Below are positions 2,690 to 60,782 of a stretch of 64,000 nucleotides of DNA, one piece after another. Numbering within the stretch: position 1 is the stretch's first letter; every line of letters starts with the position of its first letter. The stretch is from Chara braunii (Eukaryota > Plantae > Charophyceae). Under the pieces are notes generated by a model that was given only the letters and a program-made list of their open reading frames with translations, had not been told where the DNA came from and searched no databases. Location of the stretch: assembly GCA_003427395.1 (NCBI GenBank), contig BFEA01000046.1:3182484-3246483 (forward strand). Direction: 5' to 3'. Both the position numbers and the translations under genes were made by a program.

Positions 2690-2905
2690 TTATTTTTTTT
2701 TTTTTCTTCTTTTTCTTCTTCTTCTTCTTCTTCTTTTTCTTCTTTTTTCTCTTCTTCTTCTTCTTTTTCTTCTTCTTCTTCTTCTTTTTTTTCTTCTTCC
2801 TTCCTTATCTTCTTTCTCCCCCCCCTCTCCTTCATCTTATTTTCCTTCTTCTCCTTCATCTTTCTCCCTTTCCCCTCCCCACTCTCTTCTTCTCTCTCTC
2901 TCTCA
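2690..2905. repeat. Poly-T/(TTC)n/(CT)n low-complexity tract
   Basis: Directly visible. It explains the poly-F/S/E/K ORFs here. Confidence 0.95.
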
Positions 2906-2978
2906 ATGGGAACTTTCCTAAGCTTAGAGTAAATGGTAAGAAGCCTTCTCACTAGTAATGATCTCTCCATGGGCTCAT

Positions 2979-3854: not shown

Positions 3855-4120
3855 ATTCTGTTTCATGCTTGGTTGTAGTCATAAGCTTCAAGCATGTGTT
3901 TGAGCAGGTCTCACTCACACGCATGACTCAACATTCACATGATAATATTCCATTGCATTCTTGGTTGTAGTCATGAGCATCAAGCATGTGTTGGAGCAAG
4001 TCTCACTCACCATGCATCGCTCATCTCTCATATGATGCCATTTTGTTTCATTCTTGGTTGCATCCATGAGCCTTGGGCATATGTTTGAGCAAGTCTCACT
4101 GACATGTATGGCTTATCCTT
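3855..4120. repeat. About 92-bp tandem repeat, 3 copies
   Basis: CTTGGTTG...CATGTGTTTGAGCAAGTCTCACT recurs three times. Confidence 0.8.
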
Positions 4121-4134
4121 CATTAGGTAGTCTT

Positions 4135-18379: not shown

Positions 18380-19074
18380 ATGTTATCGGAATTAAACATA
18401 AATTGTGCTTTTCTTTTGCACATTTGGACTGCCAAAGTTTGGATAGTATGAGTGAGCTTGCTAAAGAATGAGTGATATAAGGACTAACTAGAATTGTGTC
18501 ACGATGAGTTAGAAGATAGCGTTTGAGGCTACTTCCTTGATAAGCTACCTTTGAAAGAATGTGTGCAAAACAATGACACGGGGTATGGGGGTGAGAATGG
18601 TTGAGATGGGTGTATTGTGAGCTTTGGATGAAATAAAGATTGCGCTTTTGAGAAGAAACCGTGAGTTCGGATTGACAAGCAAAGCAAGGCATTGAGTGTG
18701 AGTCGAGTACTAGAGAGGTTAGGGAACCTATGGGTAAAGAGGTGTGAAGAACACCCCTTCCCTAGGAGCCTAATCCAACTAAGTTTTGAATGAACTTGAA
18801 AGTTGAGAGGTCAGAAAGAGTGAAAACAGAGGGGGTGTCCCCGTCCTCCGCTATGGTTGAATGGTCGGGTGGGCTAGTACTACTTGAGGACACAAAGCCT
18901 CAACTCGAGTGCTTGATGCTAAGTCGGGTGTATGCATGAACGACGAATGGTATTGAGAAAGGATAAGGGATATCGCACACATAAAATTGTAAAGAGATGA
19001 CCACCTTCTAACCCCAAGACAAAGATGAGATCCTTGTCCTCAAGGCCTATCCCCTTGGGCGCTAACATTGAGAT

Positions 19075-19260
19075 GGATAAGGACGACCCTCAAGAGGCCG
19101 TTCAACTGGAACGGATAAGGACGGCTTTGACAAGGCCGTTCGACTGGAATGGATAAGGATGGCCCTGCCAAGACCGTTCAACTGGAATGGACAAGAACGC
19201 CCTTAACCAGACCGTTCAATTGAGAATGAAAAGAATGACTCTAACCAGGTTGTTTGGAAT
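19075..19260. repeat. 38-bp tandem repeat, 4-5 copies, in the 3' UTR of element C
   Basis: GGATAAGGACGACCCTCAAGAGGCCGTTCAACTGGAAC and variants. Confidence 0.85.
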
Positions 19261-20368
19261 AGCTCCTGACAAGGGTCATTCTTTGGAATTGTTACTAGCG
19301 TCGCCTTGCTGCCCTTGCATGGCTGCTTGAGAAATGATGGGTTGGACGAATCAGAAATTTGCATTGAAGTATTGCTTGAGGGTTGGAAATTGTATTGCAT
19401 ATCAGGGGGGCCTAGGCGGATTGGAAAGGACATGAAAATTGCATTGGAAGAATTTTACTTTTTTCTAGTCTGAGGCCTCGGCAGGAGGGGGATGCCGGCC
19501 CCAGGACCTCTACCCTTCAAGGGAAAAATCTCAGTGCGACCTGCTGCTCATAAGGAAGGATAAGGGTTAAAGAACCAAGGCATCTTTCTCTTGGATTGGT
19601 GTTCGCCGTCCGGAACTAACTCCGACAACGAGCTCTAGTCGGGGAGTTCGAACTGTGCCTCATGCTGAGAACCTAAACGTCAAGGGCGTGGAGCCAAACG
19701 GGTGTGGAACCATTCTTTTCCTAAGTCTCATTTGCTCTCCTTAACCACACGCCATACTGTAGAGGGGCGGCGTGACCGTTTGAGATGGACAAAGGTTGCT
19801 CGCGTTAAGTTGAGCGGCACTGTCCAAAGGGAGGTGTCGGGCGGGGTACCGGTGGAGTCCGCACCCACCACAGGGCGAGTGACACCGCCCTACCGGATCA
19901 TTACAACCGTTCCGAGACTAACAACGAAGTCTTCGTAATTGCACTCGCAGACTGATAGAGAGCCCGAACTCTCTTAAAAGGAAGAGGCCGGATCCAAGAA
20001 AACACCACTTGGGAGGAACGATTGGCGAGGGGGCCACTTGTGGTATGATGGGGTCCTATGAGGCGTGGACTGGACCGCCTAACAGATGTGAGGAGGCACC
20101 TGAATGAGGATGCCCATTTCCAAAGAAGTGGTTGTCGGACCAGAGTAGAGGATGAGGTGAGTTATCAGTGGGGGAGGACTGATCACCCTTCCTTTTTGGG
20201 GCTGATGGGCCTACATTTGTCTACTTAGTTGGCAGGGCAAGGTCTGCGTACCTCCAAGGGAGAATCAGTCGTGCGATGGGGACATCGCATTTTGAGTGGG
20301 GGGAAGGCATATCATCTACCGATGAAAAAACGCAAAAGGATAAGGTTACTATCAGTTCGAGAAAGGCA

Positions 20369-20880
20369 TCATGTGTAATTGAATTTGCGTGGGCTTGATA
20401 AAGGTCTGGCAAGATGTCCAGAAGAGAAAATGCATGTGTAATTGACTTTGCGTGGGCTTGAGAAAGGCCTGGCAAGATGTTCAGAAGAGAGAAGGCATGT
20501 GTAATTGATTTTGTGTGGGCTTGAGAAAGACATGGCAATATGTCCAGAAGAGAAAAACATGTGTAATTGACTTTCTGTGGGCTTGAGAAAGATCTGACAA
20601 GATGTCCGGAAGAGAAAGGCATGTGTAATTGACTTTGCGTGGGCTTGAGAGAGGCCTAGCAAGATGTCCAGCAGAGAAAGGCGTGTGTAATTGACTTTGT
20701 GCAAGCTTCAGAAAGGTCTGGCAAAATGTCCAGAAGAGAAAAGCATGTGTAATTGACTTTGCAGGGACTTGAGAAAGGCCTGGCAAGATGACCAGAAGAG
20801 AAAGGAATGTGTAATTGACTTTGTTGGGCTTGGGAAAGGTCTGGCAAGGTGTTAAGAAGAGAGATGCATATGAAATGGAT
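20369..20880. repeat. About 62-bp tandem repeat, 8 copies
   Basis: CATGTGTAATTGACTTTGCGTGGGCTTGAGAAAGGCCTGGCAAGATGTCCAGAAGAGAAAGG. Confidence 0.93.
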
Positions 20881-25606: not shown

Positions 25607-28600
25607 ATGAGGGAGCGTGTGCGAGGGAGCTGCGTTGCGCAGTGTCAGCGCGAATACCCTTACAAGGGTATCCGCCCTGGTTTTTGCAGATGACAGGCAA
25701 AATGGGTTGGTCAAAATAAGCCGTGCGAGGTACGACCACGTCCGGGACCCGCCTTGGCTAAGTTAGGAGGTATGTGGGTGCACAGTCTTAAGGCGCGCGT
25801 GTGATTTTTCTGATTGAGAAGGCGGCCGGTCTAGTCGACCGACCTGGACCGTATTACGGACCTGATTAAGGAAGGGAAGTTCGTTTTTGGTTGGCACACG
25901 CGACCGACGGTAGGACTGGCGCGCCGGTAGGCGCGCGGAATGGCCATGGCGCGGGTTGGTAGGTCGCCGCAGGCACTTAGGGGCCGTGGGTGCAAATGTG
26001 GGCTGTAGGAATGGCCAGGGCATTTTCGTGGCCCTGAATATGGCGCGGCACTACTTTACATAGGAGGTTGCGCCTGTTGGTCTCAAGCAAGGGCATAACC
26101 CTATAGGTTACGGTGTTGGATTATTGCTACGGAGGTTCAGGGATCGAGGCCGGCGGGAGTTGGAGTAGCAGCGGCGGAGCGTCGTGGAGGAAACTGAGGG
26201 GGTTGAGGGCCCGACGGGGACCGGTAGGGCACCAGTGGTCCTCGGCCTTTGTTTAGGATTTATATATATATATATATATGTTATTCTATTTTATATTATT
26301 TTTGTTTTATTTATTTATTTTTATTATTATCCACAGGTCCCACGCCGTTTAGGGGCGCCGTATCGCGGCGGCTGTTAGGGACCGAGAGCCTGGCCCAGTG
26401 GTACACCCATGAGCTGATTGGGAGGCAATCCCTCGTTCGGCCCGGACGGTGGGCCTCCGTGGATGAAGCCGAGTGTTTTGGGCTGCCCGGAGCCGCTCAG
26501 GTTCCGGGGGGCTGCACGACAGCTCCGCTGAGTCCTTCGGGACATCCGTAAAAAAAAAATTGGAAAGATACGGGGAAGATTTGCATGGCCCCGGCGCAAG
26601 GATGAAGTGTATAATCCGTCGCAAGGTCCGACAGTCGGCTGCTTTTATCATAATCGAGCGTTGTCGGACCGCGCGGTGTCGGGAAGGGCCGGGTTGATGT
26701 CAACGCAGTCCGCCTACTGCCGGGAACGAGAGGAGCAAAGCGACGGACGGTGGAAGGGGTGGAGCAGGCGAGCGATGAAAGGCAGGGTAGAGGAAAAGGG
26801 GGCGGAGTGAACCTGGCCGGGTTCGGTGCCGGGGTGCATTCGGAACGAGCACGGGAGATGGCGGATTGGTGGGTGGGTGTAGCCGGAAAGGCATATCTCG
26901 CCCGATCCTGATCGGAATCGAGCGAGGGAGGAGGCAAACCTGGGGTTCTTACCCCGGGCGAATCCATTGGTAGGGGTAGATTAGGGAGAAACATGGAGTA
27001 GGAGGAGTTAGTAGGAAGTTGGGCCGCGTGAGGCTATGGCAGAAGGGTAAGTGGCGGGGGTAAGAGGTCGCTTACCTCACCCGGTGTCGGTCGGAATCGG
27101 ATGGGAGAGAGTGCTATATGGGGGGTTTTCGGTCAGGCGACCCCGATGGTGAAGCTAGTTTTGGAGAAAAGAGAGTAGGAGGGCCGGCACGAGAGAGAAG
27201 TCGGTGCTATGCATGGCGGGGTAGATTGCAGGTGGAGACTGAATGAACCTTCCCGTATCCTAGCGGGAGATTCATTCTCGTATTTAGCGAGCCGGGTGGA
27301 TGAGCGCGTTGGGGCTTCATAAAGAGAGGTAGGGCGGAGCGTTACAGTCCGGTCAGCCACTACAGTGTGGGCGCTGTTGGGTCGAGAGAAAGGGTAGAGG
27401 AACAGGCGGAGCGACGGGCGAACGAGGAAATACAGCAAAGAACCCGGACGGGAATCGTACCGGGTGCATTCGAAAGGGGGCAAAGGGGAGAATCGAGATA
27501 ATACTCAATTCTTGATAGAATCAAGTGGGGTAGACATCGGAATCGGGTTTTTAGGGACGGGCGAACCCAAAGGTAAAGTCGGATTTAGCAGAGGGTTAGT
27601 AAGCTAGTCGGGGCGAAGAGAAGCTATTGCGTGGAGCTATGGCGGAGCGGAAAGATGAGGGGAGCGAAAGGCTTTTATCTCGCTCGATCCTCGATGGAGT
27701 CGAGCGAGACAAGATGTGATTTAGGGGTGTTGGGGCTTTGAGAGAGTTGTGGCAACGTTAAACTTAGGAGTTAGTGGACAAATGCGGAGTTACAAGAGAG
27801 GGATTGTGAGTTGGAAGCTAGCCTAAGTGCGCATGCCGGCTACCTCGGTCAATTCGAAGGGGGGACTTACCTGCACAGTTTAAGCCAACCCGCCGATGTG
27901 TTGGACTCAAACCCTCGTAAGAGTAGCCTCAACTTTTTGGAACTGGCTTCTTTCCTGCCCGCTTCGGGCAGGACCGAGAACTGGTGCCTACTTCCAGATT
28001 TTCGACAAACTGTTACCTGCCTGTTTCGAACTGTTGGCGGCTGAGCCAGTGGAAGGCGAGTTGAAGATTCTGAGGCCTGCATCACCGGCAAGCTCACTGC
28101 TCGCCCCACCTTGCTGAAGACCAGCCCACGGGTCGAGGTGTTGCTCAGCCCGACAGTCGAAGGGGGAGCATGGGGAGTAAGTTACGGGCTCACACCATCG
28201 ACTGTTGATGGGGCGGCGCCCGTCTGACCGGGAAGGGCGATGGGAGGTGAGCCACCTGTTGCGGACTAAGACGGTGGCAGGCCGCTACAGAGTGGGGGTT
28301 TGGTTGTTAGCCGGGACACCGACTATCCCACCAAGTGCAGTGACTGGTGGAGAGTTGCAAGTTAGTAAAGCTCGCCTGTCTCGGCCTTGGCGGGTTGAGT
28401 GCTGCAGTCGGGGAAGTTGCCAGGAGATTGGGTCTGGCAGCTTGACTTTAAGTCGTAACCAAGTTGCTGCAGATTGGTGCATTGTGGGAAGGGCATTGTT
28501 GGGGTCGTAAGACGACAATCTTAGAGGATTGGTGTGGGGGGGGCTGACAGGTTGGACTGCACAAACTGGTGCTATTGTTGCGTAGTGTGACGAGCTGCTG

Positions 28601-29401
28601 CTGTGCCATTGACAACGCCACGTATTGCTGCTGACTATTGCTGGCCGCGCGAGCTGCGGATGCGCCTATTGACTGGGCACAATTTGGTTGCTGCTGGTTA
28701 TTGCATATCGCTGCGGCAAGTTGTTGTCTGCTACAGCCTGCTGTGCAGCAGCCATTGGAACTGGAGGAATCACTGAGTCTGGGAAAAAAAGGGTGTCGCT
28801 ATGAACTAGAGGGTCGTCACCGGAGAGTTGGTCCAGCAGGGTGACTTCAGGTTTGACTTCGGGTTGACTGAAGGCTACGTGTTTGGCCATCATTGCGTGA
28901 CCCTAAGGTGAGACAAGATAACAAGGCCCTCTCCTGTGAGTCTGAGTGCACCTCTCTTGGATTTGAGAGTCTTAAAGCGTCTCCTTCTGCCCTTCTTGTT
29001 CTAAGTTTGGTTCTGAGAGGAAGGCGGCAGGCGGGATTGCAACCCATAATCCGCGCCAAGGCCTCTGTGGGAGGTTCGCCCCACCGATTGCGGGAGCTCT
29101 GCCGGAACTTAGGAGGAGTTCTGGAGGCGGGGAACTTAGAGGTAATCATTGCTTCCCTTCTATATACCCAGATTATAACCCTTAACTGTATCTCTTTCTA
29201 TGACTTGGCTGAGTGTACTGCATGTGTACCTGAATTTGAGTTTGACTTTCAGGACATAAATCAGACTAAGTAAAGGAATGCATGTGCAATCTCAGTTTCA
29301 GTTTTGTTGACTGCCTGAAGGCAGATTGTGAACAAAGGGGAACTACATCTGGGGAAGGGGGGGAGAAACACAATTTGCTTGAGATTGAAAGGGTCTTATA
29401 G

Positions 29402-30287
29402 AGTCAGGCATGTTCCATAAGATTGGATGGCCTGACTGTTGTGTTTTATTCTGGTTTTCTGTAAAGGGTCAAGCTTTGTTTCTAAGATGAATGGCTTGGC
29501 CGTCGCGTTTATTTAATTTCGTCAGGCTTTGTTCCTAAGATGAATGGCCTGACTACTTATTTTGTGGGGATTTAGGTTGTGCATACTTGAGCGCCAGACA
29601 TTGTTCCATAAGATTGGATGGTCTGGTCGCTGTTTATTTTTTTTGTGGTTTCTAATGCTTTGTTTTTTTTTGTGTTAAAAGAGGGGGTTGAACTTTGTTT
29701 CTAAAATGAATGGCTGAACTCCTTTGTTTGTTTATTCTGAGGGAGTAACCTTCGCTGAGGTCAAAGCATGTTTCATAAGATTGGATGGCTTAGAGCTCAT
29801 GTTGCACACAGATGGATCAAAGAGAAACAAACCTGGCGGAGGACCAGATATGTTCCATAAGATTGGATGGTCTGGCCCAATGCCTCGCATATGTTAGAAC
29901 CCAAAAGGTTATAATTTGGCTATATTTTATTATTATTTTATCTATGAACGGGCTAGTCAGACAAGGGTTCCATAAGATTGGATGGTCTGACTATAGCTTA
30001 TCGTAATTTTGAAGAGAGTACAACTAAGAATATAACTGAAGGTAACTTTGGGCAGGCTGAGCTTTGTTTCTAAGATGAATGGCTCAGTCCTACGTCCAAC
30101 TTTTGAATATTAAGTTCATAGAATTGTATATAACTTGAATATTAAACAGTTCAGGGCGACTAAGTTTTGTTTCTAAGATGAATGGTTTAGTCATATGCCC
30201 AAAAGAAGAGAGAAGTAGTTGTGCAACCTGTTCGTGTATGCTCAATGGCTGGTTCAGGCATGTTCCATAAGATTGGATGACCTGACT
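29402..30287 (+). ncRNA. Array of 11 covarying stem-loops with TAAGAT loop (putative cis-acting RNA elements)
   Basis: Examples: AGTCAGGC-ATGTTCCATAAGATTGGATG-GCCTGACT; GGTCAAGC-TTTGTTTCTAAGATGAATG-GCTTGGCC; GGCTGAGC-...-GCTCAGTC. G-T pairs favour plus-strand RNA. Confidence 0.75.
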
Positions 30288-30570
30288 TTAGGTCTTATGT
30301 AAGCAGGGTATAAAGGGTTAAGGAATTGAAAGATTATGAACCATTGTCTGCTAAGTTGACTTGGGGATGGCGAGTACTTACCTTTGTGGTTTGATATTGC
30401 ATGTGGCTGAATGAGGCTACTACTTGGTCTGGGTTTCAGTTGACAGGTAGTTGCTTTAGAGGCTCGCCGCGTGCTAGAGCAATAAGAGTAAGTTTATTTG
30501 ACTTGGATCTATTCTCGCATTTTCTCGGATCCTTTGTTATATTTGGCTTTATATGAATCTTGGTAAGCTA

Positions 30571-30870
30571 CTTTCTCTATGGGAAGCGCTGCCGAAATTT
30601 CTACAAATCTAAGGAGTTAGTCGACTTTTGACTTTTCAAGTTCAATTTGTCTAAAGTTCATATATGACTTAGTAAAAGTCTGGAAAACCTTCTTTTCTAA
30701 AGGGAGTGTTGCCAAAATTTTTGCTAATTCAGGGAGTTAAACAAAATTGGAATTTGAAAAGTCAAAGACTATTTCTGTTTTCATATTCGGGATGATATAA
30801 ATTCTGGAAAGACACTTTTCCTATTGGAAGCGCTGCCAAAATTTTCTTAGTTTAAAGGGGTTAAATTATA
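30571..30870 (+). repeat. About 122-bp tandem repeat in LTR A, 3 copies
   Basis: TTTCTNNNGGGAGTGCTGCCNAAATTT...GGAGTTAG at about 30571, 30693 and 30816. Confidence 0.8.
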
Positions 30871-33140
30871 TTTTGACAGGTGGCGATTCTGATGATCCAC
30901 TCTATATGGGGGAGATTATGCCAGAGTCTACTTTTGCTTTGGGCACTGCCTAGCAGTAAATTCAGGCTTAGTCAAGTTAGGATGATTTAGGTGAGGTCGT
31001 GATGTGGGGTTTATTCTCCATGGATTTATAGGCTTAGCCTGGGGATTGGTCTGTCGTGTGTTAGAGGTCCTCTGGACCGTTTGATTCAGGATTGGACCGG
31101 TTTAGGCATAAATCTTACAAGGATCATCTTCTGTTATCACTGATAATAGGTCGGTTGTCGATTCGTCAGTCTACGACTTAATTCCAACCCACTCCCCCGG
31201 ACTCAACCTAAAAGGTTTTAGCCCTGGTGATCTTTGTTGTTTTGTTAAGCTTTCACCCAGACTTTTATTGAATGGCCATTTAACAAAGGCGCTGAGTATT
31301 TAATTATGGTAGGCTGGACAAGAGATTGAGACTTGCTTGGCTAAAGCGAGGGGTATGAGTGTTGAGGATGGTTGGGGTGGACTCCGTGTAGCGCGTGGAC
31401 TGTTGTTTGACACTTTGATGTGATTGCAGGTATGTGCTGTGGCTTAGATTCTGGATTTGATTGCTGCGACCACATATATACATATGGTTGTGAGAAACCC
31501 CACTGAGACTGTGAGAAGTGATTGTCACATACTTATCCCCCTTTATACATGTATACGAGTGTGCACCCATGTTGAGTGTTCGCGTGGCCTAAGGAGCCCC
31601 GTACTAAAGGCGTACTCAGAGGATAGGACTGGGTGACGCAAGGGAGACCCTTCCTTTCATTTTGCTTCTTGAGGGTTTCTTAGCCGGACGTTGGTCCTGG
31701 GCCAGGGTTCAAGGTCCTTATCCAGTATATCCCAAGCCCTAAACTCTACAGGGAAGGGACCTCCCCCCGCGCAGAGCCTATTTACTCTGTCCGTCGAGAC
31801 ACCCAACCCTGAGGGCGGAAGTGTCGCGAGGGCCGAACGACATGCCCTTCAGTCGCTCAATATCGTGACGGGTAACCACCCCCCACGATACATTCCTTCA
31901 GCCATTCAATATCGCGGGGCCGGAGACGCGATTACCACGTATGACCAGCATCGTTGGTTGGTATAGGATTTGGCCTGCAACCGCGCGACTTTATATTGAA
32001 GCCTTGCGCGACGTTTCGCCATCGCAGCTTCTAGGGGTTATGGGATCAAGGGACTCGCACGTATGCGTGAACGCTCGGGATTATTATAGGCCGTCGGCGC
32101 CGACTGAAAAGGGGTACCCCAGGGTCATGATCCCCTTGGGATAGGGGGGCATTTGGCCTACTCTTGCTTTTTAGGATTTTCATAGTTGGACGTTGTAGTT
32201 CGTGGCAGCCGTCAAAGTCAAACCCCTTGACTTCCGACCAGGCCTGGAGCAGGACTCATCCCCAAGGTCGCAAGAAACGACTGCCACCACTGGTATGGAC
32301 CTGTGTACCACCCGCTCTGCACAGAGTGCAGAAGAGGGTGTGTGGTCTTCAACCGCGCATGGCGGTTGTCCAGCGTCGAGAGATTAACCCTCAAGGCATG
32401 TGTCAGCCGACACTTGAGTGCCGAATGCGACCCTCGAGATTAACAAGGACCGCATGGGTCTGGGTACTACATACTACGCCATCACTGTGACCGCTTTGCG
32501 TACGCTTGCATTGCGAATCGATATGAGTAGGCCCTGCGTCCGCGCGATTTTATACTAAGTCTCGCGCGCGACGCCTATCCGATTTCCGCATCGGAAGGTT
32601 ATGGGTTGGTTACTGAAGGGACTAGTAGTGTTATCGTGTTGTTCGAGGTGCGTGCGCGTGTGTTTTTTTTTTTTTGTGTTCGTAGTGTGGCGTATGCATG
32701 GTGAGTGGGATGCGTCCTACTCGACCGACGACGGGCCGCGCTTGGGACTTCAGCCCCCCAAGATGACGGTTCGCGTGCGGGTCCGACAAAGGCCTATTAC
32801 CGCACGTACCCCCTATGCTACAACGAACAAGAAACTCCCTCAGCTGGTCCACCTCTGCGATTGCAACTGATTAGCTTTCATACTGTGGACTGGTAGCTCG
32901 GCGGGGATACGCCCACCGAAGGGAGGTGACAGCTCCTGTAAGGTGGAGGTAAGTCATGCCTCGCGTAGGCCCTATCCTGTCGTAGGGGCTCGCTGGAGGT
33001 ATGGCTGGCGCACTCGGCCGGAGCGGCTTGCGGAAGCTCCATGTATATTGCGACGAAGGATTTAAACCAAACTCCTGCATGACGCGGCCGAGAGGGTCCC
33101 GCGCTGCCTTGTGCGGTGCCGGACCGATGCGCCCGACAGG

Positions 33141-33158
33141 TGGCGCCGTTGCCAGGGA
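33141..33158 (+). promoter_or_regulatory. Primer-binding site, tRNA-Asp type
   Basis: TGGCGCCGTTGCCAGGGA lies 2 nt after the LTR. It is one mismatch from the Athila-type tRNA-Asp PBS TGGCGCCGTTGCCGGGGA. Confidence 0.9.
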
Positions 33159-33505
33159 TAACGGAACCCTACCGTTGTCGCTGGTGGAACGACACCCGGG
33201 TATGGGAATGAGAGGGAATTAGGCATGATTGGGTAAATGATGAGTGAGCGGCGTGGTACTTTGCGTGGTTATGCATATGTAAAACTTGATTACTAATGGA
33301 TCCAGCTGGTAGCTGGGCTGGTTGCGTGATTAAAAAGATTGTATAAAAAGTCTCTTGAAGGGAGTAGGGTTTTGTTAGAATAAGCGTGGTAGTAGGAGCA
33401 GTGCCTGTGAGGATGAGGGAATGTAGGGAGGAAGTGGGGAGCCTGATAGAAATATGTATGTCGGGTGACTGAGTGAAGCTTCTCATTTCTTCTCTTAACA
33501 GGAAG

Positions 33506-35127
33506 ATGTCAGGAGGTGGGGGCGTCGTCCCAAGGAAGACCCTGACGCTCGACGACCTCATCAAGGCCCTGGACAAGTGTAAGAGGGCGCCGAGCAATGT
33601 CCCGAAAGTCGATACATTTCATTTCAAAGGAGAGCAGGTGTCTGATTGGCTGGACTTGACTGAGCAGGCGCTGGTGGGATTGTCGGATAAGATAAAGTTC
33701 CAACGAATCTTGAAGTACGTCCTTCATAGTCACCATCGGGAGGTGAGCAAGGTTGTGGACACCGCCAATGGCAGCTGGGCATGGTTCAGGAACCTGATAT
33801 TAAGGAAGTACAGGCTAGGGGACGGCCTGCTGACCATGGCTGACCTGGAAGCCATGAAGAAGGATGAGTTTTCCACGATTGGGGTGTTCGTACAGGAGTT
33901 TAAGAAGCGGGCAAGGAAGGTGAACGGGATGTCGGAAGAGGCGCAATGTGCCATCTTCCTGGGGCTGCTCATTGGTACGGAGGCCTCGGAACTGACAAGC
34001 CACGGAGGGGGAAGTGAGAAGCTCACCTGGGCCACTATCGATAAAGGGGTGGAAAAAGGTAGTTTGGACCAGGTAGAGCAGCACCAGATGCGGCTGCAGA
34101 GACGCAAAAGGAAGGAGAGGGACGCCACCACATCCGGGACCCCGGGGGTAAAGAAGATCGTTACGGACGTGCTGGCGGCGTTGGGGTATGATAATGAGGC
34201 GGAGGTGCAGAAAAGAGGGGTGACCGTGGCCTAAGGCCGGATATTAGGGGCAGCAGATGAGGAGGCTGGAGTCCTAACTAAGGCCCAGAGGAAGCAGCGC
34301 AATTTGCTAATGGGAGGTCAGGGATCAGGGAAGGGGCAGGCCCCTCAGGCAATTGCTGCACCGTCACTGGCCGCCACGACGGCACCAGTGGCAGCGGGGC
34401 CATCACAGATGGGGCCGCCACCAGCTTGTGGCCATTGGATGCCACATTGTCAGATAGCACTCTGGCCCAGTTGTAACCACTGCACCTCGTGTGGAGGAAG
34501 CCAAGCCCACGCTAGGCAGATGGTCCCATATTCGGGCCCACCAGCAAGGCCCACCAAGCTATCCTGCGGTCCAGGGACAGTTTGTGGCCTAACCGCCACC
34601 CTCACAGCAGGCATCGCGGGCTACCATGGCCGGGGGAGGGAACCAGGGGCAGGGTGGACAAGGTAATGGGGGCCGAGGCCAAGGAGGTCGAGGAGGCGGT
34701 GGCCGAGGCCAAGGAAGGAACGATGGAGGTCGCGGGGGTGGATGGAGTGGCCAAGGGGGACAAGACCAAGGTGGCCAAGGCGGCCAGGAAGGAGGCCAAG
34801 GGTATGGAAAACCCCGCTTTGATTGTCGGAATGCCACCTGCTGGCATTGTGGCTATCAAGGCCACACCATCCGATTTTGCCAAGTGCGGCGGGATGACGA
34901 ACTCTCCGGGTTGATCTCCACCAACATGGATGGAGATATATACGATAAGTATGGGAAGTATATTGAGTTGAAGACACCCGGCGGAGTTAGGCAGGAGGCC
35001 CAAAGGCGAGCGGCGGCAGGGCCAACACCCCCCGCCATGTTCAGGATGTGGCAGGAGAGAGAGGAACCGACCATAAGAGTTGAGGAGATCGTGGAGGATG
35101 AGGACGTAACTCAACAACTAAAGGCGG
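33506..35127 (+). pseudogene. gag: gag of element A, 5' part, interrupted by element B
   Basis: Capsid-like FHFKGEQVSDWL...FVQEFKKRA, RGG/G-rich tract and zinc knuckle CWHCGYQGHTIRFC. The ATG follows the acceptor TTCTCTTAACAG. Confidence 0.9.
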
Positions 35128-38100
35128 TGTCGGCACGAATACCCTTACAAGGGTATCCGCCCTGGTTTTTGCAAATGACAGAAAATAGTTTGGTTTAAAG
35201 TTTAAGTATACTGCGCTAGGCGTGGCTGGGTTTGTAATTTACGTTGACCGGTTGGTGGACTAGAGTAAAGAGTGCGTGGGCGCGCTGTTTTGAGGCGCGC
35301 GTGATTTTGTTTCTATCGTTGATTATAAAGCTGGCGCAGACGCCGGTTGGTTCGTTTCTATTCTATCTTTATTTTTACTTTTATTTTTGTTCAGTTTTGA
35401 TTAGACTGGGGTTAAGGATATTTCCTCTTGGTCGGCATGTTTGATTGAGTTACGCGTGCGCGCGGAGGGCGACCTCGACGACAGCGACAGTGTGACGGCG
35501 GTAGGTCTTGGCACGTGGAGTAGCGCGAGTGGCAGCCGTGGTACAGCTTGGTAGGTCGGCGCAGACGTCAGACGGCCACGCGCACGGTTGTAGGGAAAGG
35601 TGAGGCTCAGGCCAATTTCCCTGGCCCTGAGCGCAGCGCCGCACCGCCTTATATGGCGCTCTGCGGATGTGGATCTCAGGCTTGGGCTTAGTCCCATAGG
35701 TTATGTCATTGGGTTGATGCTACGAAGGTGAGGGGATCGAGGCTAGCAGGCGTCGGCGCACTAATTGCAGCGGAGCGTCGCGGAAGGGACCGGTGGGGTT
35801 GAGGGCCGCCAGGGTTATCCCCCTTGGTTTTGTTTACGGCCGCGGCGGCGGGCCCAATCCGTGAGACCGACGAGGCGCCAGCAGCCCCGTTGTTCCCCGA
35901 TATTTATTTGTTTATTTTTATTTTTATCATACTTCCCCTTCTTTTTGTTTTTATTTATCGCGTCCCGTCTGGGGACGCGAGACGGCAATGGGGTCGCGTG
36001 AGATGTGTGAAATTCGTGGGATTGCCTGAAGTGCAATTGGGCGCTGCACTAACCATGCCGGGCGAGAATGGGAGTGACAATGGACGCAGTCTGTGGCGGG
36101 TGCATGCGCTGAGGCATTGGGCGCTGCACTAACCATGCCGGGCGAGCGCTGAGATGGCGCAGCTACGGTGCTAAGCAGGCAAGGCGAGGCAGAGCCAGCA
36201 GCGGGCGACGAGTCAACGGACAGGGAGCGACGGGCGTTGAAGGAGGTAAGGAAAAACCCAGAAATGAACCTGGGCGCATCTTGCGCCAGGTGCGTGCGAA
36301 GTAGAGATGGCGGAGGGGGCCATGTCGGGAAGCGGGGAAGTAGCTATCCCACTCGTTTCTCGATGAAACTGAGTGGGAGAAAGTGTTAGTCTAACGGGTT
36401 TTTGTAGGGCGAATTTAGTCATGGTGTCAGAACTAGTAGAGGTTTAGTAAGTATAGAGTTAGCAGGGAAAAGCACTGCGCGGAGTCATGGCGGGAGGAAA
36501 GCTGGGGGGATAAAAAGATGTCTATCTCCCTCGTTTCTGACTTTTTTTAAACGAGGGAAGGTTGGATTCTGATGTTTTTTGGTAGGGCGAATGCGTTGGT
36601 GTTATTAGATTTGAAGTTAGTTGTGTAGAATGAGAGTAAGTAGAAAAGAGTGTGTGCGGGAGATGGCGGGAGAAGCGATGGAAGGAGGCAAGATGCGGGA
36701 ATCAGTCAATTCCTCATGGAATCGGTCGAGGGGGGGTTATGGAATGGGGGTTTTAGGGGTCGGTGACCTCAGATATGAACCTAGATTAGCGTGAAAGTTA
36801 GCGAGTTAGGAGGTTAGTTGAGAAACTGGTGCGCGAGGCTATGGGGAGAAGTGAGGGAGAAAACGGACGGCTCGCCCGTTACTCGATGGAAACGGGCGGG
36901 GAAGCGGGCAGATCAGAGGTTTTTGCGTGGGGCGAACACGATGGAGAGGTCAGAATTGCGGGGCAGCTAGTGTTTAGGGAGCTAGGAAGGAGGGAGTTGC
37001 GCGCGGAGGGGAGGAAAACAGCGTTGTAAAGGCGAATGAATCTAGTTGCGCTGTTGCGAAAGATTCACTCAGTCCCGGGTCACCGGGTTTCCCTGAAGCC
37101 GGGATAGTGGGGTTGGGGGCTTACCTGTTGTCCGGGTGTGACTGTGGACCGGAGGACACTCCGCCTCCCCTCCTTCGAAGGCAACCGCTTGCTGCGACTG
37201 TTGTGGTCCCGACACTCGATACAGTAGCCGGATCTCCTGTCCCCACGCGCAGGCCTGAGAAGCAGTGTATGCTCCCATGTTCTGGCCGAAGATTCCTTTC
37301 TCGCCCCCGTCATCAGAGTAGCCTGAGGCCACCTGCAGGGTAGGAGGTACCACCGAGATCGAGCACCTGAAGGTGACCGGCTCGACCTTGACGGGAGAGG
37401 ACAAACAGACAAGGAGGGGCATGCGAGCTGCAGGCTTACCTGTCGGCTGGTGCAGTGCCTGGCTCGTCAAGCAAGGCTCCTGTAAGCCAACCATGGGGGC
37501 TTAGCTGTTAAACGGTGTGCTCGCACACCGAGTGTCGACAGGTAGAGGTGAGGGCGGATGAGAGCTGAGCTGCGGTCGCCGAGCTGCTGGGCTGCCGGAG
37601 TGCGGCTCGCTGAGCTGCTATTGGTGAGCCACCGACTCACAGGGGCGTTGACAACATGTCTGTGCAGGCTGCTGTTCGCCGTTTCCTGCCGCTGAATACC
37701 ACCATTGCGACTGTTGTTGTGTCTGCGGGATGATCCTACGTAATTGGCCTACAACCGCTAGTACTGTGCTTTGTGGCGTGCACCACGATCGCTAAGTCCT
37801 TCCTGCACGTGCTTATGGTACATACGGCTTAGGTGCGGCTTAGGTGGGGCTTGCTGCACTCCCACTGCGCTCCGCTGCACAGGTCGATGTACGGGTTTTA
37901 TAAAGAGGAGGTACGGCACACAAAGTGTGTGCTGCTTGAGTATCGCCGATTAGAGTTGCGTGGCTGCAGTTTCATTAGGGGAAGTGACAGTGAGGCATGG
38001 GAGGAGTGAACGGGCTGAAGGAGGGATTATTATGGCAGCTTGGAGCTTCGTCGAGGCGTTGGTTGTCGGTCGTTTGGCTCAGGATTGGCCTAGCGAGTAC

Positions 38101-38631
38101 TACTTGGCTGCCATTGCGAGGCCGTCAGGCGCACAAGGTTTCAAGGCCCTCTCCTGGGAGTCTGAGAGCACATTTCCTGGATCTGAGAGTCTTAAATTTG
38201 CTTTCTCCTGCCCTTCTGACTTTAAGTCAAGTCTGTTGGTCCTCAGAGGAAGGCGGCAGGCGGGATTGCAACCCGTAACCGGCGCCAAGATCTTTGTGAG
38301 AGATTCGCCCCACCGATTGCGGGAGCCCTGCCGGAACTCAGGAGGAGTTCTGGAGGCAGGGAACTGACAGGTAATCATTGCTTCCCTCTATAAACCCAGG
38401 TATAACCCCTATATGCATCTCCCAATGCATCGCTGGCTGAATATATGGAGTGCAGCCTTACTTTGACTTTTGTTTGACCTTCAAGATCTAATTCAATTTA
38501 AGTAAAGGGATGTGTGTGCGATCTCAGTTTCAGTTTTGTTGATTGTGTGAAGGCAGATTATCAAAGAGAACTGCATCTGGGAAAGGCAGGATGGAGGGCT
38601 GAATTGCATGAGATTTGAATGGGTCGTTAAG

Positions 38632-39575
38632 GCTGGGAGGTCCCCATAAGTTTGGGGAAGCCCAGCGCTTTGTTCATTTTGCGGTTTGCATAGAGCAATC
38701 ACGCCGCTCTATAAGTTTACGTAGCCTGAATGCTTTGGAGGCTGGGACGTCCCCATAAGTTTGGGGAGACCCGGTGTTGTGAATTGCATGGAGGGTCAGA
38801 ACGCTCTATAAGTTTAGGTGACCTGACTGCTCTGACTTGCGAGGGTTTGACTGCGTTTGAATTTAAGGGGCTCAGAGCATTCAGTAAGTTTTGGTGCTTT
38901 GAGCTGCATTAGCTTCTTTTGGGTTTTCTCAGTCTCTTTGGGTTCTGAACGAGGGGGCTGAGTTGCTCTATAAGTTTAGGTGGCCCAGTCTCTTCCTGCA
39001 TTTGTCTTAAGGGAATGAACCTGACAAAGGGCAGACCATTTTGTAAGTTAAGGGGGCTTGACCCAATGCCACACACAGGAAAGCTCAGAGAGAAAGGAAT
39101 CAAGTGAAGAGGCAGACCCTTCTGTAAGTTCAGGGGGGTTGACTCAAAGCCTCGCAAATGCTGGAACCCAATGGTTATAATTTGGCTATACTGTATTACT
39201 ATTTTATCTATGAACAGGCTAGTCAGACAGAGGTTCCATAAGATTGGATGGTCTGACTGTAGCTTATCATAATTTGAAGAGAGTACAATTAAAAATATAA
39301 TTGCAGGTAACGTGGGCCGGCTGAGCATTGTTTCTAAGATGAATGGCTCAGTCCTATGCCCACCCTGAAGATTAAGTTCAGAGAGGTATAATTTGGCTAC
39401 CTAAACAGTTCAGGGCGACTAGAATAGTCTAGTCATATGCGCAAGGAAGATAAAAGTAGTTGTGCCCTCTGTTTGTGTATACTTAGCTAAATCAGGACGC
39501 TCTATAAGTTTAGGTATTCTGAATCTAGGCCTGGCTAAGTTGGGCGCGCTCTGTAAGTTCAGGTGGTCTGACCTA
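38632..39575 (+). ncRNA. Array of 12 covarying stem-loops (10 TAAGTT, 2 TAAGAT loops)
   Basis: Inner stems CCCA/TGGG, CTA/TAG, CTG/CAG, TCCA/TGGA and TTC/GAA surround TAAG(T/A)T. Outer stems include GCTGGG/CCCAGC, GGTCAG/CTGACT and GCTCAGAGCA/TGCTTTGAGC. Confidence 0.75.
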
Positions 39576-39885
39576 TGCCTTATGTAAGTTGGGTATAAAG
39601 GGTTAAATCATTGAAAGATCATGAACTATTGTTTGCTCAGGTTGACTTGGGGATGGTGAGAGTACTTACCTTTGTGGTTTGGCCTGCATGTTACTAAGTG
39701 AGGTNACTACTTGNTTTGAGTTTCAGTTGGTAGGTAGTCGCTTNANTCGCTCGCNACGTGCTAANACCNTAAGAGTTAGTTTCAATTCCTGCATNTTTTT
39801 AGCNAAGTTTTTTTTACTTAGGTCAATTCTTGCATTTTCTGNGATNATTTATAATACTTGGCTTTGTANAAACCTTGGCAAGTCA

Positions 39886-40430
39886 CTTTCTCTACGGGAA
39901 GCGCTGCCGAAATTTTTACAAATCCAAGGAGTTAGCCAACTTTTGACTTGTCAAAGTTCAACTTATCTATTCTTTATATCTGACTTAGTAAAAATTTAGA
40001 AAGTCGCATTATCTAAAGGGAGCGCTGCCCAAATTTCTGCTAATTCAGGGAGTTAGACAAAATTGGACCTTGAGAAGTCAAAGTTACTTTCGAATTCTGG
40101 ACTTAGCCTTGTATAAATTTTGGACTTACATTTTTCTAAAGGGAGTGCTGCCGAAATTTCTGCAAAACTAAGGAGTTAGTTAAAACTTGCCTAAATTGAA
40201 CTCAAGTTGTCTTTTGAGTTTATATCTGTCTGAGTATAAATCAGAAAAATCTTATTTTCTAAAGGGAGTGCTGCCCAAATTTTTGCTAATTCAAGGAGTT
40301 AGACAAAATTTGACTATCCAGAATTAAAGATTATTTCTGCTTTCATATTTGCATTTATATAAATTCTGAAAAGATACTTTTCCTACGGGAAATACTGCCC
40401 AAATTTTCTTAGTTTAGAGGAGATAGATTA
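39886..40430 (+). repeat. About 122-bp tandem repeat in LTR B, 5 copies
   Basis: GGGAGTGCTGCC-like core at about 122-bp spacing. Confidence 0.85.
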
Positions 40431-41552
40431 TATTTTGACAGGTGGCGGTTCTTGCGATCCACCCTGAATAGGGAAGATTCTGCCATTAGTCTACCTTTGC
40501 TTTGGGCACTAGTTTAAAGGTAGGTTTAGGCTTAGTTAATTGGGATGCATGAGTAAATTCGTGATATGGGGATTATTCTCCATGGACTTATAGGTTTAGC
40601 CTGGGGCATTGACCTGGCATGTGTTACAGGTCCTCTTGATCATTGACTCAAGTTCAGGACTAGATTCAGGTTGATCCATTGAGGATCGTCTTCTGTTATC
40701 ACTCATAACAGGTCGGTTGTCGATTCGTCGGTTTACGATTCAACTCCAATACACCCCTGCCATTGAACCTAAAGGTTTTAGCCTTGTGATTGAACTGTTT
40801 TGTTGTGTTTTCACCCGGACTTTATTGAATGGTCATCCAACAAAAGTAGTGAGTATTTATTTAAGAGTTGCACGAGTGAGGCTTGTATGGCTAAAGCGAG
40901 GGGTATGAGTGCAAGGAATGGTTNAAGTTGACCCCGTGTAGTGCTTGGACTCTTGGACTTTATTTAAGTCTCGCACGCGACGCCTATTTGATGTCCGCAT
41001 TGGAAAGTTATGGGTTGGCTATCGAGGGGCTAGGAGCGTTGTTGCGTTGTTTGTGTTGTGTCGCTTCGTATGTGCGTGTGTTTTATTTTTTTGTTCGTAA
41101 AGTGGTGTGCGCGTGGTATGTGGGATGCGTCCTAGACGACCGACGTCGGACGGCGCTTGGGACTTCAGCCCCCCAAGATGTCGGTTCGCGTGCGAGCTCG
41201 ATAGGCGTATTACCGCACGTACCCCCTATGCTACAGCGAACGAGAAACACCCTCGGCTGGTCCACCTCTGCGATTGCAACTGATTAGCTGTCGTACTGTG
41301 GACTGGTAGATCGGCGGGGATACGCCCATCGAAGGGAGGTGACAACTCCCGTAAGGTGGAGGTAAGTTGTGCCTCGCGTTGGCCCTATCCTTTTGTAGGG
41401 GCTCGCGAGAGGTATGGCTGGCGCACTCGGCCGGAGCGGCCTAAGGAAGCTCCTCTTGTGTGTTCGTGACGAGGTTGGTCCTACTCCTGCGTGACGCGGC
41501 CTAGAGGGTCCCGCACTGCCCCGTGCGGTGCCGGACCGATACGCTCGACACG

Positions 41553-41570
41553 CGGCGCCGTTGCTGGGGA
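41553..41570 (+). promoter_or_regulatory. Primer-binding site, tRNA-Asp type (degenerate)
   Basis: CGGCGCCGTTGCTGGGGA lies 2 nt after the LTR. Confidence 0.85.
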
Positions 41571-50500: not shown

Positions 50501-50642
50501 AATTCAGATTAAGTAACGGGATGTGTGAGCGATCTCAGTTCCACTTTTGTTGATTGTGTGAAGGCAGATTGTGAAAGAGAACTGCATATGGGAAAGGCAG
50601 GATGGAGGGCTGAATTGCATGAGATTTGACTGGGTTGTTAAG

Positions 50643-51590
50643 GCTGGGAGGTCCCCATAAGTTTGGGGAAGCCAAGCGCTTTGTTAATTTTGGGGTTTGC
50701 ATGGAGCAATCAGGCCGCTCTATAAGTTTTGGTAGCCTGAATACTTTGGAGGCTGGGACGTCCCCATAAGTTTGGGGAGACCCGGTATTGTGAATTGCAT
50801 GGAGGGTCAGAACGCTCTAGAAGTTTAGGTGACCTGACTGCTTTGACTTGCGAGGGTTTGACTGCGTTTGAATTTAAGGGGCTCAGAGCATTCAGTAAGT
50901 TTTGGTGCTTTGAGCTGCCTTGGCTTCTTTTGGGTTTTCTCAGTCTCTTTGGGTTCTGAACGAGGGGGCTGAGTTGCTCTATAAGTTTAGGTGGCCTTGT
51001 CTCTTCCTGCATTTGTTTTAAGGGAATGAACCTGACAAAGGGCAGACCCTTCTGTAAGTTCAGGGGGCTTGACCCAATGCCACACACAGGAAGGCTAAGA
51101 GAGAAAGGAATCAGGTGGAGAGGCAGACCCTTCTGTAAGTTCAGGGGGGTTGACTCAAAGCCTCGCACATGCTGGAACCCAATGGTTATAATTTGGCTAT
51201 ACTGTATTACTATTTTATCTATGAATAGGCTAGTTAGGCACGGGTTTCATAAGATTGGATGGTCTGACTATAACTTATCATAATTTGAAGAGAGTACAAT
51301 TAAGAATATAATTGCAGGTAACATGGGCCGGCTAGCATTGTTTCTAAGATGAATGGCTCAGTCCTACGCCCACCCTGAAGATTAAGTTCAGAGAGGTATA
51401 ATTTGGCTACCTAAACAGTTCAGGGCGACTAGAATAGTCTAGTCATATGCGCGAGGAAGATAAAAGTAGTTGTGCCCTATGTTTGTGTATACTTAGCTAA
51501 ATCAGGACGCTATATAAGTTTAGGTATTCTGAATCTAGGCCTGGCTAAGTTGGGCGCGCTCTGTAAGTTCAGGTGGTCTGACCTATGCCT
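50643..51590 (+). ncRNA. TAAG(T/A)T stem-loop array, third copy
   Basis: Colinear with 38632-39575. Confidence 0.75.
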
Positions 51591-53832: not shown

Positions 53833-54790
53833 GGCTGGGAGGTCCCCATAAGTTTGGGGAAGCCCAGCGCTTTGTTCATTTTGGGGTTTGGATAGAGCAA
53901 TCCGGCGGCCGCTCTATAAGTTTATGTAGCCTGAATGCTTTGGAGGCTGGGACGTCCCCATAAGTTTGGGGAGACCCGGTGTTGTGAATTGCATGGAGGG
54001 TCAGAACTCTCTAGAAGTTTAGGTGACCTGACTGCTCTGACTTGCGAGGGTTTGACTGTGTTTGAATTTAAGGGGCTCAGAGCATTCAATAAGTTTTGGT
54101 GCTTTGAGCTGCCCTGGCTTCTTTTGGGTTTTCTCAGTCTCTTTGGGTTCTGAACGAGGGGGCTGAGTTGCTCTATAAGTTTAGGTGGCCCAGTCTCTTC
54201 CTGCATTTGTGTTAAGGGAATAAACCTGACAAAGGGCAAGCCATTTTGTAAGTTCAGCGGGCTTGACCCAATGCCACACACAGGAAGGCTAAGAGAGAAA
54301 GGAATCAGGTGGAGAGGCAGACCCTTCTGTAAGTTCAGGGGGTTTGACTCAAAGCCTCGCACATGCTGGAGAGGCAGACCCTTCTGTAATTTGGCTATAC
54401 TGTATTACTATTTTATCTATGAACAGGTTAGTCAAGCACGGTTTCCATAAGATTGGATGGTCTGACTATAGCTTATCATAATTTGAAGAGAGTATAATTA
54501 AGAATATAATTGCAGGTAACCTAGGCCGACTGAGCATTGTTTCTAAGATGAATGGCTCAGTCTTACGTCCACCCTGAAGATTAAGTTCAGAGAGGTATAT
54601 ATAATTTGGCTTTCTAAACAGTTCAGGGCGACTAGAATAGTCTAGTCATTTGCGCAAGGAAGATGAAAGTAGTTGTGCCCTCTGTTTGTGTATACTTGGC
54701 TAAGTCAGGACGCTCTTTAAGTTTAGGTATTCTAACTCTAGGCCTGGCTAAGTTGGGCGCGCTCTGTAAGTTCAGGTGGTTTGACCTATG
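53833..54790 (+). ncRNA. TAAG(T/A)T stem-loop array, fourth copy
   Basis: Colinear with 38632-39575. Confidence 0.75.
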
Positions 54791-60675: not shown

Positions 60676-60782
60676 AAAAAGCTTCACATCCTAATCGACC
60701 TTGCTCATTGACTTACCTTAACCAATTCTGTTCGGAGTTCCGTGCACCCCCTTGCGGCCCCTTAAGGCTCTCGATTGGACGG

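Follow-up and report, generated by a model that had tools for sequence, protein, structure and literature searches.

The stretch of DNA analysed here, 64,000 nucleotides from the charophyte Chara braunii (contig BFEA01000046.1 of assembly GCA_003427395.1, positions 3,182,484 to 3,246,483 of the forward strand, called the window below), contains a Ty3/gypsy (Metaviridae) retrotransposon in whose giant (7.5 kb) long terminal repeat (LTR), LTR A, lies an array of stem-loops at 29401-30290. The nature of the host element was established by its gene order, its LTR termini, its primer-binding site and a GCGG target-site duplication. The domain order gag-protease (PR)-reverse transcriptase (RT)-RNaseH-integrase (INT) is present in a related Chara locus, L003 (Pfam), and PR and RT were found in the window; aligned LTR starts and ends gave the family termini TGTC(A/G)G and CGACA, and the true end of LTR A was fixed by a nested insertion, element B. 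The gag region of the outer element (33.5-35.1 kb) is broken at 35125/35128 by this insertion and gag-protease resumes at 57379. All protein matches of the gag-protease open reading frame (ORF) at 57805-58878 come from Chara braunii, with 55-87% identity, so that the host is a charophyte alga and not a land plant, contrary to the original prediction made on this DNA from its letters, which had spoken of a plant LTR.

That prediction described 11 stem-loops, including a degenerate copy with a TAAAAT loop at 29702, and all of them were recovered, the six stem pairs that it quoted being present within 1 nt of the positions given. The 11 hairpins, of ~40-60 nt each, all lie on the plus strand, which is the sense strand of the element. 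Each unit is built from an outer stem of 8-9 bp, with a sequence that varies among the units, an asymmetric internal loop (in most subfamilies AUUGU on the 5' side and UG on the 3' side, ~5 nt versus 2 nt), an inner stem of 3-6 bp and a hexaloop, and two core types carry the UAAGAU loop: type A, with the inner stem UCCA/UGGA, and type B, with UUC/GAA. The stems as first described are real but incomplete: a third helix extends many units beyond the quoted stems, for example around H9 and H10, and many units are therefore ~55-60 nt long with part of each "spacer" paired. Over the window, a 20-nt motif pattern matched nine times, always on the plus strand, against 0.21 matches expected, and 11 of the 17 clean copies of both core types, the TAAAAT copy included, belong to the array. 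When TAAGNT hexaloops with a closing stem of 3 bp or more were counted, 39 lay on the plus and five on the minus strand, about the 45 hairpins estimated earlier, and with an outer stem of at least 5 bp as a further condition the numbers were 31 versus one. No other hairpin-loop family was found in the window or in the array-less related locus L002, and a minus-strand TCCATA "loop" turned out to be merely an 81-bp satellite. The array is not a plain tandem repeat, as had been noticed, but the accompanying statement that its spacers are unrelated does not hold for H1-H5, each of which is trailed by a conserved U/G-rich 3' tract (YGYTGTGTTTATTT-like; YGYUGUGUUUAUUU-like; 29440-29760) that H7-H11 lack. 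This tract could be a piece of an ancestral repeat unit or a separate signal.

Compensatory changes keep these hairpins paired. When both core types were aligned jointly with MAFFT, the A-type insertions were misplaced, and this alignment was replaced by an ungapped one of B-type units and by covariance-model alignments, the models being built from B-type units and spanning the 39-nt hairpin only. Among 37 ungapped B-type units, 86.9% of the cells were paired, compared with 78.6% after shuffling (0 of 500 shuffles as high; the rows share descent) and 22-51% in slid controls; all nine outer pairs change on both sides and one of them is GC in 18 units and AU in 17. The covariance model retrieved 74 units from the window plus nine loci, and in this alignment (10 sources, with rows again related) 87.6% of the cells were paired versus 77.3% in shuffles (0 of 500) and 21-55% in slid controls, with a covariation score of 0.521 versus 0.309. 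RNAalifold recovered both helices unaided, with compensatory change in seven of nine pairs, which bears out the covarying outer and inner stems of the original prediction. Because alignment rows are related by descent, orthologous hairpins were also compared between locus pairs picked as roughly independent: changes on one side of a pair tended to go with changes on the other, with an odds ratio of 7.7 (p = 1e-10) as opposed to 2-2.9 when partners were shifted, and the pair was kept in 26 of 32 double changes. Between family members, identity amounts to 64.5% in hairpin columns and 66.5% in spacers, which are thus conserved as well as the hairpins, and it is therefore the pairing that is kept. 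Inner stems illustrate the range of complementary solutions, since UUC/GAA, UCCA/UGGA, UCCCCA/UGGGGA, UCUA/UAGG, UCAG/UUGG and UCUG/CAGG were all seen. The three copies of element B, 4-6% diverged since insertion, show single changes only and no double ones, in what is a small sample.

Several features argue that the folded molecule is plus-strand RNA. All 74 matches of the main covariance-model search lie on that strand, and the pairs of 63 outer stems comprise 394 Watson-Crick pairs, 61 G-U, 23 A-C and 26 others. The G-U to A-C ratio of 61:23 compares with 1.4:1 when arms of different hairpins are paired (p = 0.005), so that the G-T excess that had been taken as a sign of plus-strand RNA was found again and modestly favours it; spacer polymorphisms show no C/T excess. 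The wobble bias, the uniform orientation of the units and the coincidence of the plus strand with the sense strand of the element point, with moderate confidence, to plus-strand RNA.

The array is a property of the family and its position and order are conserved across diverged subfamilies. Chara braunii loci were fetched via their gag-protease proteins, and roughly a dozen copies were sampled out of what are probably hundreds in the genome. Of the first seven loci, six (L001 and L003-L007) carry arrays of 6-11 hairpins 3-5.5 kb upstream of gag, and two short contigs from a pattern scan (L019 and L022) carry them too; in all eight the unit order is the same as in LTR A, and H1 to H11 align unit by unit with ~75-80% identity across subfamilies despite many spacer indels. 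L019 and L022 (BFBZ01010473.1 and BFBZ01010522.1) were the only real ones among 21 loci of a metagenome scan and are of the L004/L005 subfamily type of Chara. They are 1.7-kb contigs, 87-88% identical to the Chara LTRs L004 and L005, and look like Chara-derived sequence filed among metagenome contigs. The other metagenome loci gave no covariance-model match except two marginal ones in L026; L025, which is a microbial contig from a human-gut metagenome, gave none, and a scan of viral contigs with a two-unit pattern found nothing. A seven-unit array in reverse orientation (18507-19129 of locus L030, minus strand) belongs to another family copy downstream of the fetched gene. Within the window, element B retains intact arrays even though it is a deletion derivative. 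Its 3' LTR holds two of them, a 4.1-kb segment (47486-51607) being tandemly repeated from 51609. In the B1 array UAAGAU is kept at H8 and H9, and the core of H10 is deleted. At that unit (39405-39440) the outer arms GACTAG and CTAGTC remain with few bases between them, and a GGGC...GCGC extension is still visible.

In contrast to the stems, the loop was thought to be nearly invariant, and this is so within the lineage of the window LTR but not in other subfamilies, where UAAGUU, UACUGU, CAUGGY and CAAGCC were found. UAAGAU is the loop of LTR A, L001 and L003, with UAAGAC at H9-H11 of L001; UAAGUU is that of L006 and the B LTRs; L007 has UAAGYU at H1, H2 and H7 and CAAGCC-like loops at H8-H11; and L004, L005, L019 and L022 have UACUGU and CAUGGY. 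Only the pattern Y-A-N-N-N-Y is common to all copies. In most subfamilies the scaffold CAUUGUUUC...GAAUGG is identical and three to five of the six loop bases differ, and in the B LTRs the situation is reversed: the UAAGUU loop is constant and sits on UCCCCA/UGGGGA, UCUA/UAGG, UCAG/UUGG or UCUG/CAGG, with a varying internal loop and varying inner-stem flanks. L005 has CAUGGU at H1, H2 and H4, where L004 has UACUGU or CACUGU. Loops thus change in concert along the array, which requires either short-tract conversion between identical cores or parallel selection. Since subfamilies of one host differ in the loop, a partner encoded by the element would fit better than a single loop-reading host protein. 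The Gag proteins of the window element, L001, L003, L004, L005 and L007 each contain one C-x2-C-x4-H-x4-C motif, a zinc knuckle (at 34839 in the window, 11375 in L001, 11352 in L003, 9449 in L004, 11198 in L005 and 9898 in L007), whose residue 2 is W in the elements with UAAGAU and Q or R in those with UACUGU, CAUGGY or CAAGCC. That this knuckle residue may track the loop class is a lead only.

The position of the array relative to a conserved TATA box suggests where it would be transcribed. The motif YTATGTAAG-NN-GGGTATAARGG directly follows the last hairpin, so that the array ends ~20 nt before the TATA box; of nine LTRs with an array that were examined, eight have it beside the array, the exception being L019, where no exact match exists, and two of the three nested B copies have it as well, B2 being cut short ahead of that point. 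Because the array ends just before this box, it would occupy the last 0.9 kb of the U3 region, 2.8 kb upstream of the LTR end, and would therefore be transcribed only from the 3' LTR, within the 3' untranslated region (UTR) of the genomic RNA. A block upstream of the array (28881-29140) and AAAGAAGAGAGAAGTAGTTGTGCAACCTGTTCGTGTAT between H10 and H11 (30195-30250) are conserved above the level of the hairpins and are probably promoter-proximal elements. The coordinates of all these features are collected in Table 1.

Table 1. Features of the hairpin-bearing retrotransposon and of its nested relative (positions in the window)
Feature	Position	Strand	Description
LTR A of the Ty3/gypsy element	25643..33138	+	7,496 bp; starts TGTCAG, ends CCCGACA (LTR start/end alignments and sequence reading); houses the hairpin array
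Conserved block upstream of the array	28881..29140	+	260 bp, with GAGAGGAAGGCGGCAGGCGGGATTGCAACCC... among others; many invariant columns across 7 LTRs
H1, type A	29401..29440	+	outer stem AGUCAGGC/GCCUGACU
H2, type B	29466..29504	+	outer stem GGUCAAGC/GCUUGGCC
H3, type B	29519..29557	+	outer stem GUCAGGC/GCCUGAC
H4, type A	29591..29631	+	outer stem GCCAGAC/GUCUGGU
H5, type B, degenerate	29685..29723	+	loop UAAAAU at 29702; outer stem weak
H6, type A	29759..29798	+	outer stem weak
H7, type A	29841..29880	+	outer stem CCAGAU/GUCUGG
H8, type A	29954..29995	+	outer stem UAGUCAGAC/GUCUGACUA, plus outer extension
H9, type B	30054..30092	+	outer stem GGCUGAGC/GCUCAGUC, plus GGGC...GUCC extension
H10, type B	30157..30195	+	outer stem GACUAAG/UUUAGUC, plus GGGC...GCCC extension
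H11, type A	30251..30290	+	last unit ahead of the TATA box
TATA box	30306..30317	+	GGGTATAAAGGG, preceded by YTATGTAAG; putative U3/R border and putative promoter
Primer-binding site	33141..33164	+	TGGCGCCGTTGCCAGGGATAACGG, 2 nt past the LTR end; tRNA-type; TGGCGCC..., TGGCGCCGTTGCC...
Single CCHC zinc knuckle of Gag	34839..34880	+	CWHCGYQGHTIRFC; candidate RNA-binding partner
Element B	35128-57377		nested, internally deleted, non-autonomous relative, flanked by the GCGG target-site duplication inside the outer gag
Element B, 5' LTR	35128-41635		
Element B, internal region			5 kb
Element B, 3' LTR	46730 to ~57377		~10.6 kb; two hairpin arrays
Orthologous array, LTR copy B1	38632..39572	+	~10 hairpins, mostly with loop UAAGUU; very different inner stems
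Orthologous array, LTR copy B2	50643..51582	+	~10 hairpins
Orthologous array, LTR copy B3	53834..54785	+	~10 hairpins; tandem duplicate in the 3' LTR of element B

The rest of the window presents additional features. The primer-binding site probably matches the 3' end of tRNA-Asp. Three full-length matches to the U6 small nuclear RNA, with scores of 47-57 bits that exceed the threshold of Rfam, lie inside the LTRs on the plus strand (26529-26637, 47840-47939 and 51969-52068), at ~0.9-1.1 kb from the respective LTR starts, and look like a captured U6 gene or pseudogene travelling in the LTR, in the manner of the 5S rRNA genes carried in the LTRs of Cassandra terminal-repeat retrotransposons in miniature. 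Tandem arrays occur at 1-1700 (81 bp), 2800-3780 (172 bp) and 4100-6000 (~76/91 bp), and, inside internal regions of retroelements, at 20360-20880 (63 bp) and 60700-61420 (53 bp). The segment 24000-25642, just ahead of the start of LTR A, is poor in GC (0.33) and includes a run of (TG)n as well as an assembly gap, whose Ns end near 25555.

Our best inference from the sequence is the one originally proposed, namely that the array may be a selected multivalent binding platform for a protein. TATA-driven transcription, a location in U3, the binding of a protein, which protein that is and a role in packaging are all inferred. We tentatively propose, with somewhat less than even confidence, that the platform lies in the 3' UTR and shows copies of a lineage-specific loop to Gag, marking the full-length RNA for packaging. 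In this scenario transcription would start at the TATA box; the genomic RNA would then lack the array at its 5' end and carry it a single time, in the 3' UTR derived from the 3' LTR. Six to 12 copies of one loop would be offered to a protein, the likeliest being the element's own Gag, which would bind through its single CCHC zinc knuckle and thereby tag the full-length RNA as cargo of the particle. The diversity of stems and spacers might also guard the array from template-switch deletion during reverse transcription. A function of U3 in cis at the RNA level has a precedent, because in Ty3 a U3 sequence in the 3' UTR is a cis-acting RNA element that provides one half of a bipartite primer-binding site (PMC5371799). 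Going further, the hexaloop might be a specificity code that co-evolves with the Gag knuckle, each subfamily's Gag packaging only its own RNA through 6-12 private loops; in this strong form the idea is unlikely. If true, such a code would keep competing subfamilies and non-autonomous parasites of one genome apart, and would constitute a natural, evolving counterpart of the engineered non-repetitive MS2 arrays, in which stems were diversified to survive recombination in reverse transcription.

A number of observations weigh against packaging by Gag through such a platform. The packaging signals of retroviruses and Ty1 sit in the 5' leader or in gag, not in U3, and the TATA box and U3 assignment, which come from conservation only, would imply an unusually long R-U5 of 2.8 kb. 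Two loop classes coexist within the arrays of L004, L005 and L007, which blurs the picture of one loop for one protein. The link between knuckle and loop amounts to three lineages and is confounded by phylogeny, and two further loci were unusable for this comparison, having assembly gaps at the expected array. Short-tract gene conversion between identical cores could homogenise loops without selection. The shuffle statistics overstate significance because the alignment rows are related by descent. Finally, whole-array folding beats shuffles on both strands (z = -2.5 on the plus and -3.9 on the minus strand) and does not separate them; these scores are uninformative on strand because any palindrome folds on both, and the lower absolute folding energy of the plus strand is due to its richness in G+U. 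The separate idea that the loops kiss or cyclise the RNA was also tried, and hexamers that could pair with the loops showed no enrichment in the leader, the primer-binding site or the gag region.

The same array might bind a host protein instead and help the unspliced genomic RNA to be exported from the nucleus, stabilised or translated, in the way of a constitutive transport element (CTE) or of the array of iron-responsive elements (IREs) in the transferrin receptor mRNA. The structural evidence (covariation, RNAalifold) applies equally to this explanation, the presumed 3' UTR position is that of the CTE, the direct repeat of Rous sarcoma virus, the Rex response element (RxRE) and the Rec response element (RcRE), and the scaffold CAUUGUUUC...GAAUGG, invariant across most subfamilies, could be a common determinant. 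We nevertheless regard it as unlikely: hexaloops differ among subfamilies of one genome, the internal loop and inner stem differ too in the B LTRs, where UAAGUU alone is constant, and Y-A-N-N-N-Y, the sole sequence feature of all copies, gives one sequence-specific protein little to read. The fact that the array abuts a conserved TATA box introduces a live rival absent from the original prediction, a promoter role at the DNA level. In that case the units would be iterated binding sites for transcription factors, acting in U3 as double-stranded modules of a promoter or enhancer, with palindromic flanks that are historical or suited to dimers. LTR enhancer repeats occupy just such a place as that of the array, about -20 to -950 from a TATA box conserved in nearly all copies; most subfamilies preserve the core CATTGTTTC/GAATGG as sequence, and the number of units, like that of enhancer repeats, varies, here from 6 to 11. 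The position does not discriminate, since an RNA element confined to U3 near the 3' end would also adjoin the TATA box, and duplex recognition gives no reason for arms that covary amid sequence drift, with no constant motif, for inner stems swapped for unrelated complementary pairs or for a strand-specific excess of G-T over A-C. We consider these DNA modules quite unlikely.

Control of 3'-end formation or termination appears improbable. Hairpins and U/G-rich 3' flanks would here serve a poly(A) site located in R as its upstream elements, working only in the 3' LTR, whose U3 is transcribed, or would keep read-through out of the LTR promoter; the tracts after H1-H5 resemble the far-upstream polyadenylation elements of plants, and retroviruses confine polyadenylation to the 3' site by means of upstream enhancers in U3. 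However, most units lie 300-900 nt upstream of the TATA box, beyond the reach of known upstream elements, the units closest to it (H7-H11) are those without U-rich tails, and lineage-specific loops would stay unexplained. We find it very improbable that the array is functionless, its complementarity being upheld by mutation mechanics, with template switching at quasi-palindromes in replication or reverse transcription copying changes from arm to arm and with gene conversion among the units. A template switch can make a compensatory double change in one step, and the loops of L005 compared with L004 seem converted in blocks, but template switching gives perfect Watson-Crick pairs rather than 12% G-U with a strand bias, the copies of element B (few as they are) lack double changes, and the order and positions of the units survive ~25% divergence and many spacer indels. 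Hardly credible, lastly, are precursors of small RNAs (miRNA-like or siRNA) or tiny inverted-repeat mobile insertions. Hairpins in a transposon are a common source of small RNAs; stems of 8-9 bp plus 3-6 bp, split by an internal loop, are too short for a 21-nt duplex. No target-site duplications were seen at the units, which cannot be independent insertions because their positions are orthologous and their order is the same in all subfamilies.

To our knowledge, the choice of RNA for packaging or export by LTR retrotransposons has hardly been worked out outside yeast, and not at all in streptophyte algae. A single genome contains more than 100 of these hairpins, with many variants of the stem and at least five classes of loop, and the compact module thus comes with a large series of natural mutants. 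With Gag as the partner, the array would lend itself to work on how competing transposon lineages diverge in RNA-protein recognition and would supply orthogonal RNA tags; with a host factor as the partner, it would point to a pathway of export or stability in a lineage near the land plants. Taken purely as a structure, it is a candidate for a new RNA family, and its covariation is unusually clear. The original prediction had named an Rfam match as evidence against novelty, and none was seen. With Rfam 15 over the whole window, no family reached the gathering threshold except the three U6 copies, and a permissive search of 29300-30400 returned only SNORD109A at the level of noise (E = 8, 15 bits against a threshold of 35). 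No description of the array or of the element was found in the literature searched.

Among known systems, the packaging signals of retroelements invite comparison with the proposed function. The psi signal of HIV-1, the single-stranded purine loop of mouse mammary tumour virus and the 5' packaging domain of Ty1 are cis-acting stem-loops that offer an exposed loop to a Gag with CCHC knuckles, as the Gag of this family has, and non-autonomous derivatives keep such signals as element B does. They are made up, however, of between one and four dissimilar stem-loops and lie in the 5' leader or gag, and the Chara array, a single module repeated 6-12-fold in the putative U3, is not a 5' psi by location. 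Packaging signals of RNA phages (of the MS2 translational-repressor type) and of hepatitis B virus (HBV) have in common with it many variable-stem loops with a short common motif, recognised multivalently and cooperatively by capsid protein; the dispersed packaging sites of HBV pregenomic RNA carry an RGAG loop (PMC8677749). Phage and HBV sites are scattered, including in coding sequence, and highly degenerate, whereas in Chara well-defined sites of conserved position crowd into 0.9 kb. The likeness to MS2 and to the Rev response element (RRE) that had been suggested at the outset goes no further than analogy. An MS2/PP7-type operator is one hairpin that has a bulged purine and a loop of defined sequence, of 4 nt in MS2 and 6 nt in PP7; the array hairpins have neither the bulged A nor the ANYA tetraloop, and their host is a eukaryotic retroelement. 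Export elements such as the CTE of Mason-Pfizer monkey virus (MPMV), the RxRE of human T-cell leukaemia virus (HTLV), the RcRE of the endogenous retrovirus HERV-K and the RRE of HIV are also structured RNAs at the 3' end of an unspliced retroelement, in or beside U3, and bind protein multimerically. Each of them is one large structure, either branched or a long hairpin, that has specific internal loops, and the array shows no visible similarity to them and no Rfam match: its independent 40-60-nt hairpins do not form one large branched structure of the Rev/Rex type, and its units have one asymmetric loop and no two-fold symmetry, in contrast to the MPMV-type CTE (~160 nt, two identical internal loops, 180-degree symmetry). 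No Rev/Rex-like accessory ORF was detected, the ORFs downstream of integrase in L003 matching no recognisable family, although an accessory protein beyond recognition may be encoded.

Other comparisons concern architecture. The five IREs of the transferrin receptor 3' UTR resemble the array in being repeated and in having a conserved hexaloop, an upper stem, an interruption and a freely covarying lower stem. The CAGUGN loop of an IRE, which sits on an upper stem of 5 bp, and its bulged C are absent, with an asymmetric internal loop instead, the Rfam IRE models did not match, and we know of no iron regulatory protein system in the Chara lineage; the resemblance is an analogy only. The A-repeat of Xist is likewise a multivalent protein platform, with 7-9 short hairpin-forming cores and U-rich linkers, but its sequence is unrelated and its cores are GC-rich, near-identical and part of a mammalian long non-coding RNA. 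A precursor of miRNA type would have a continuous duplex of ~21 nt, which the split stems lack, and miniature inverted-repeat or foldback elements would have flanking duplications, of which none were seen around units that are orthologous and in the same order in all subfamilies. Iterated non-coding modules are also known as the BII boxes of Tnt1, the 21-bp repeats of HTLV and the 12 Su(Hw) sites of gypsy, the U3 examples adjoining the TATA box. As in U3 enhancers, the iterated motif in Chara stands directly upstream of a core promoter, the last hairpin being ~20 nt before GGGTATAARGG. Enhancer repeats and Su(Hw) sites are nevertheless double-stranded, sequence-conserved DNA that needs neither intramolecular complementarity nor a strand-specific wobble bias. 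On recognition as a duplex the signs are mixed: the core of the Chara motif keeps its sequence in most subfamilies, but arms and inner stems covary, which a DNA model does not predict. The bipartite primer-binding site of Ty3 shares an RNA-level function of U3 in cis, exerted there by a short tRNA-complementary stretch and not by a hairpin array (PMC5371799). The array resembles in its working an IRE array, dispersed capsid packaging signals or the A-repeat of Xist without being a member of any of them, and we class it among the structured cis-elements of retroelement RNA.

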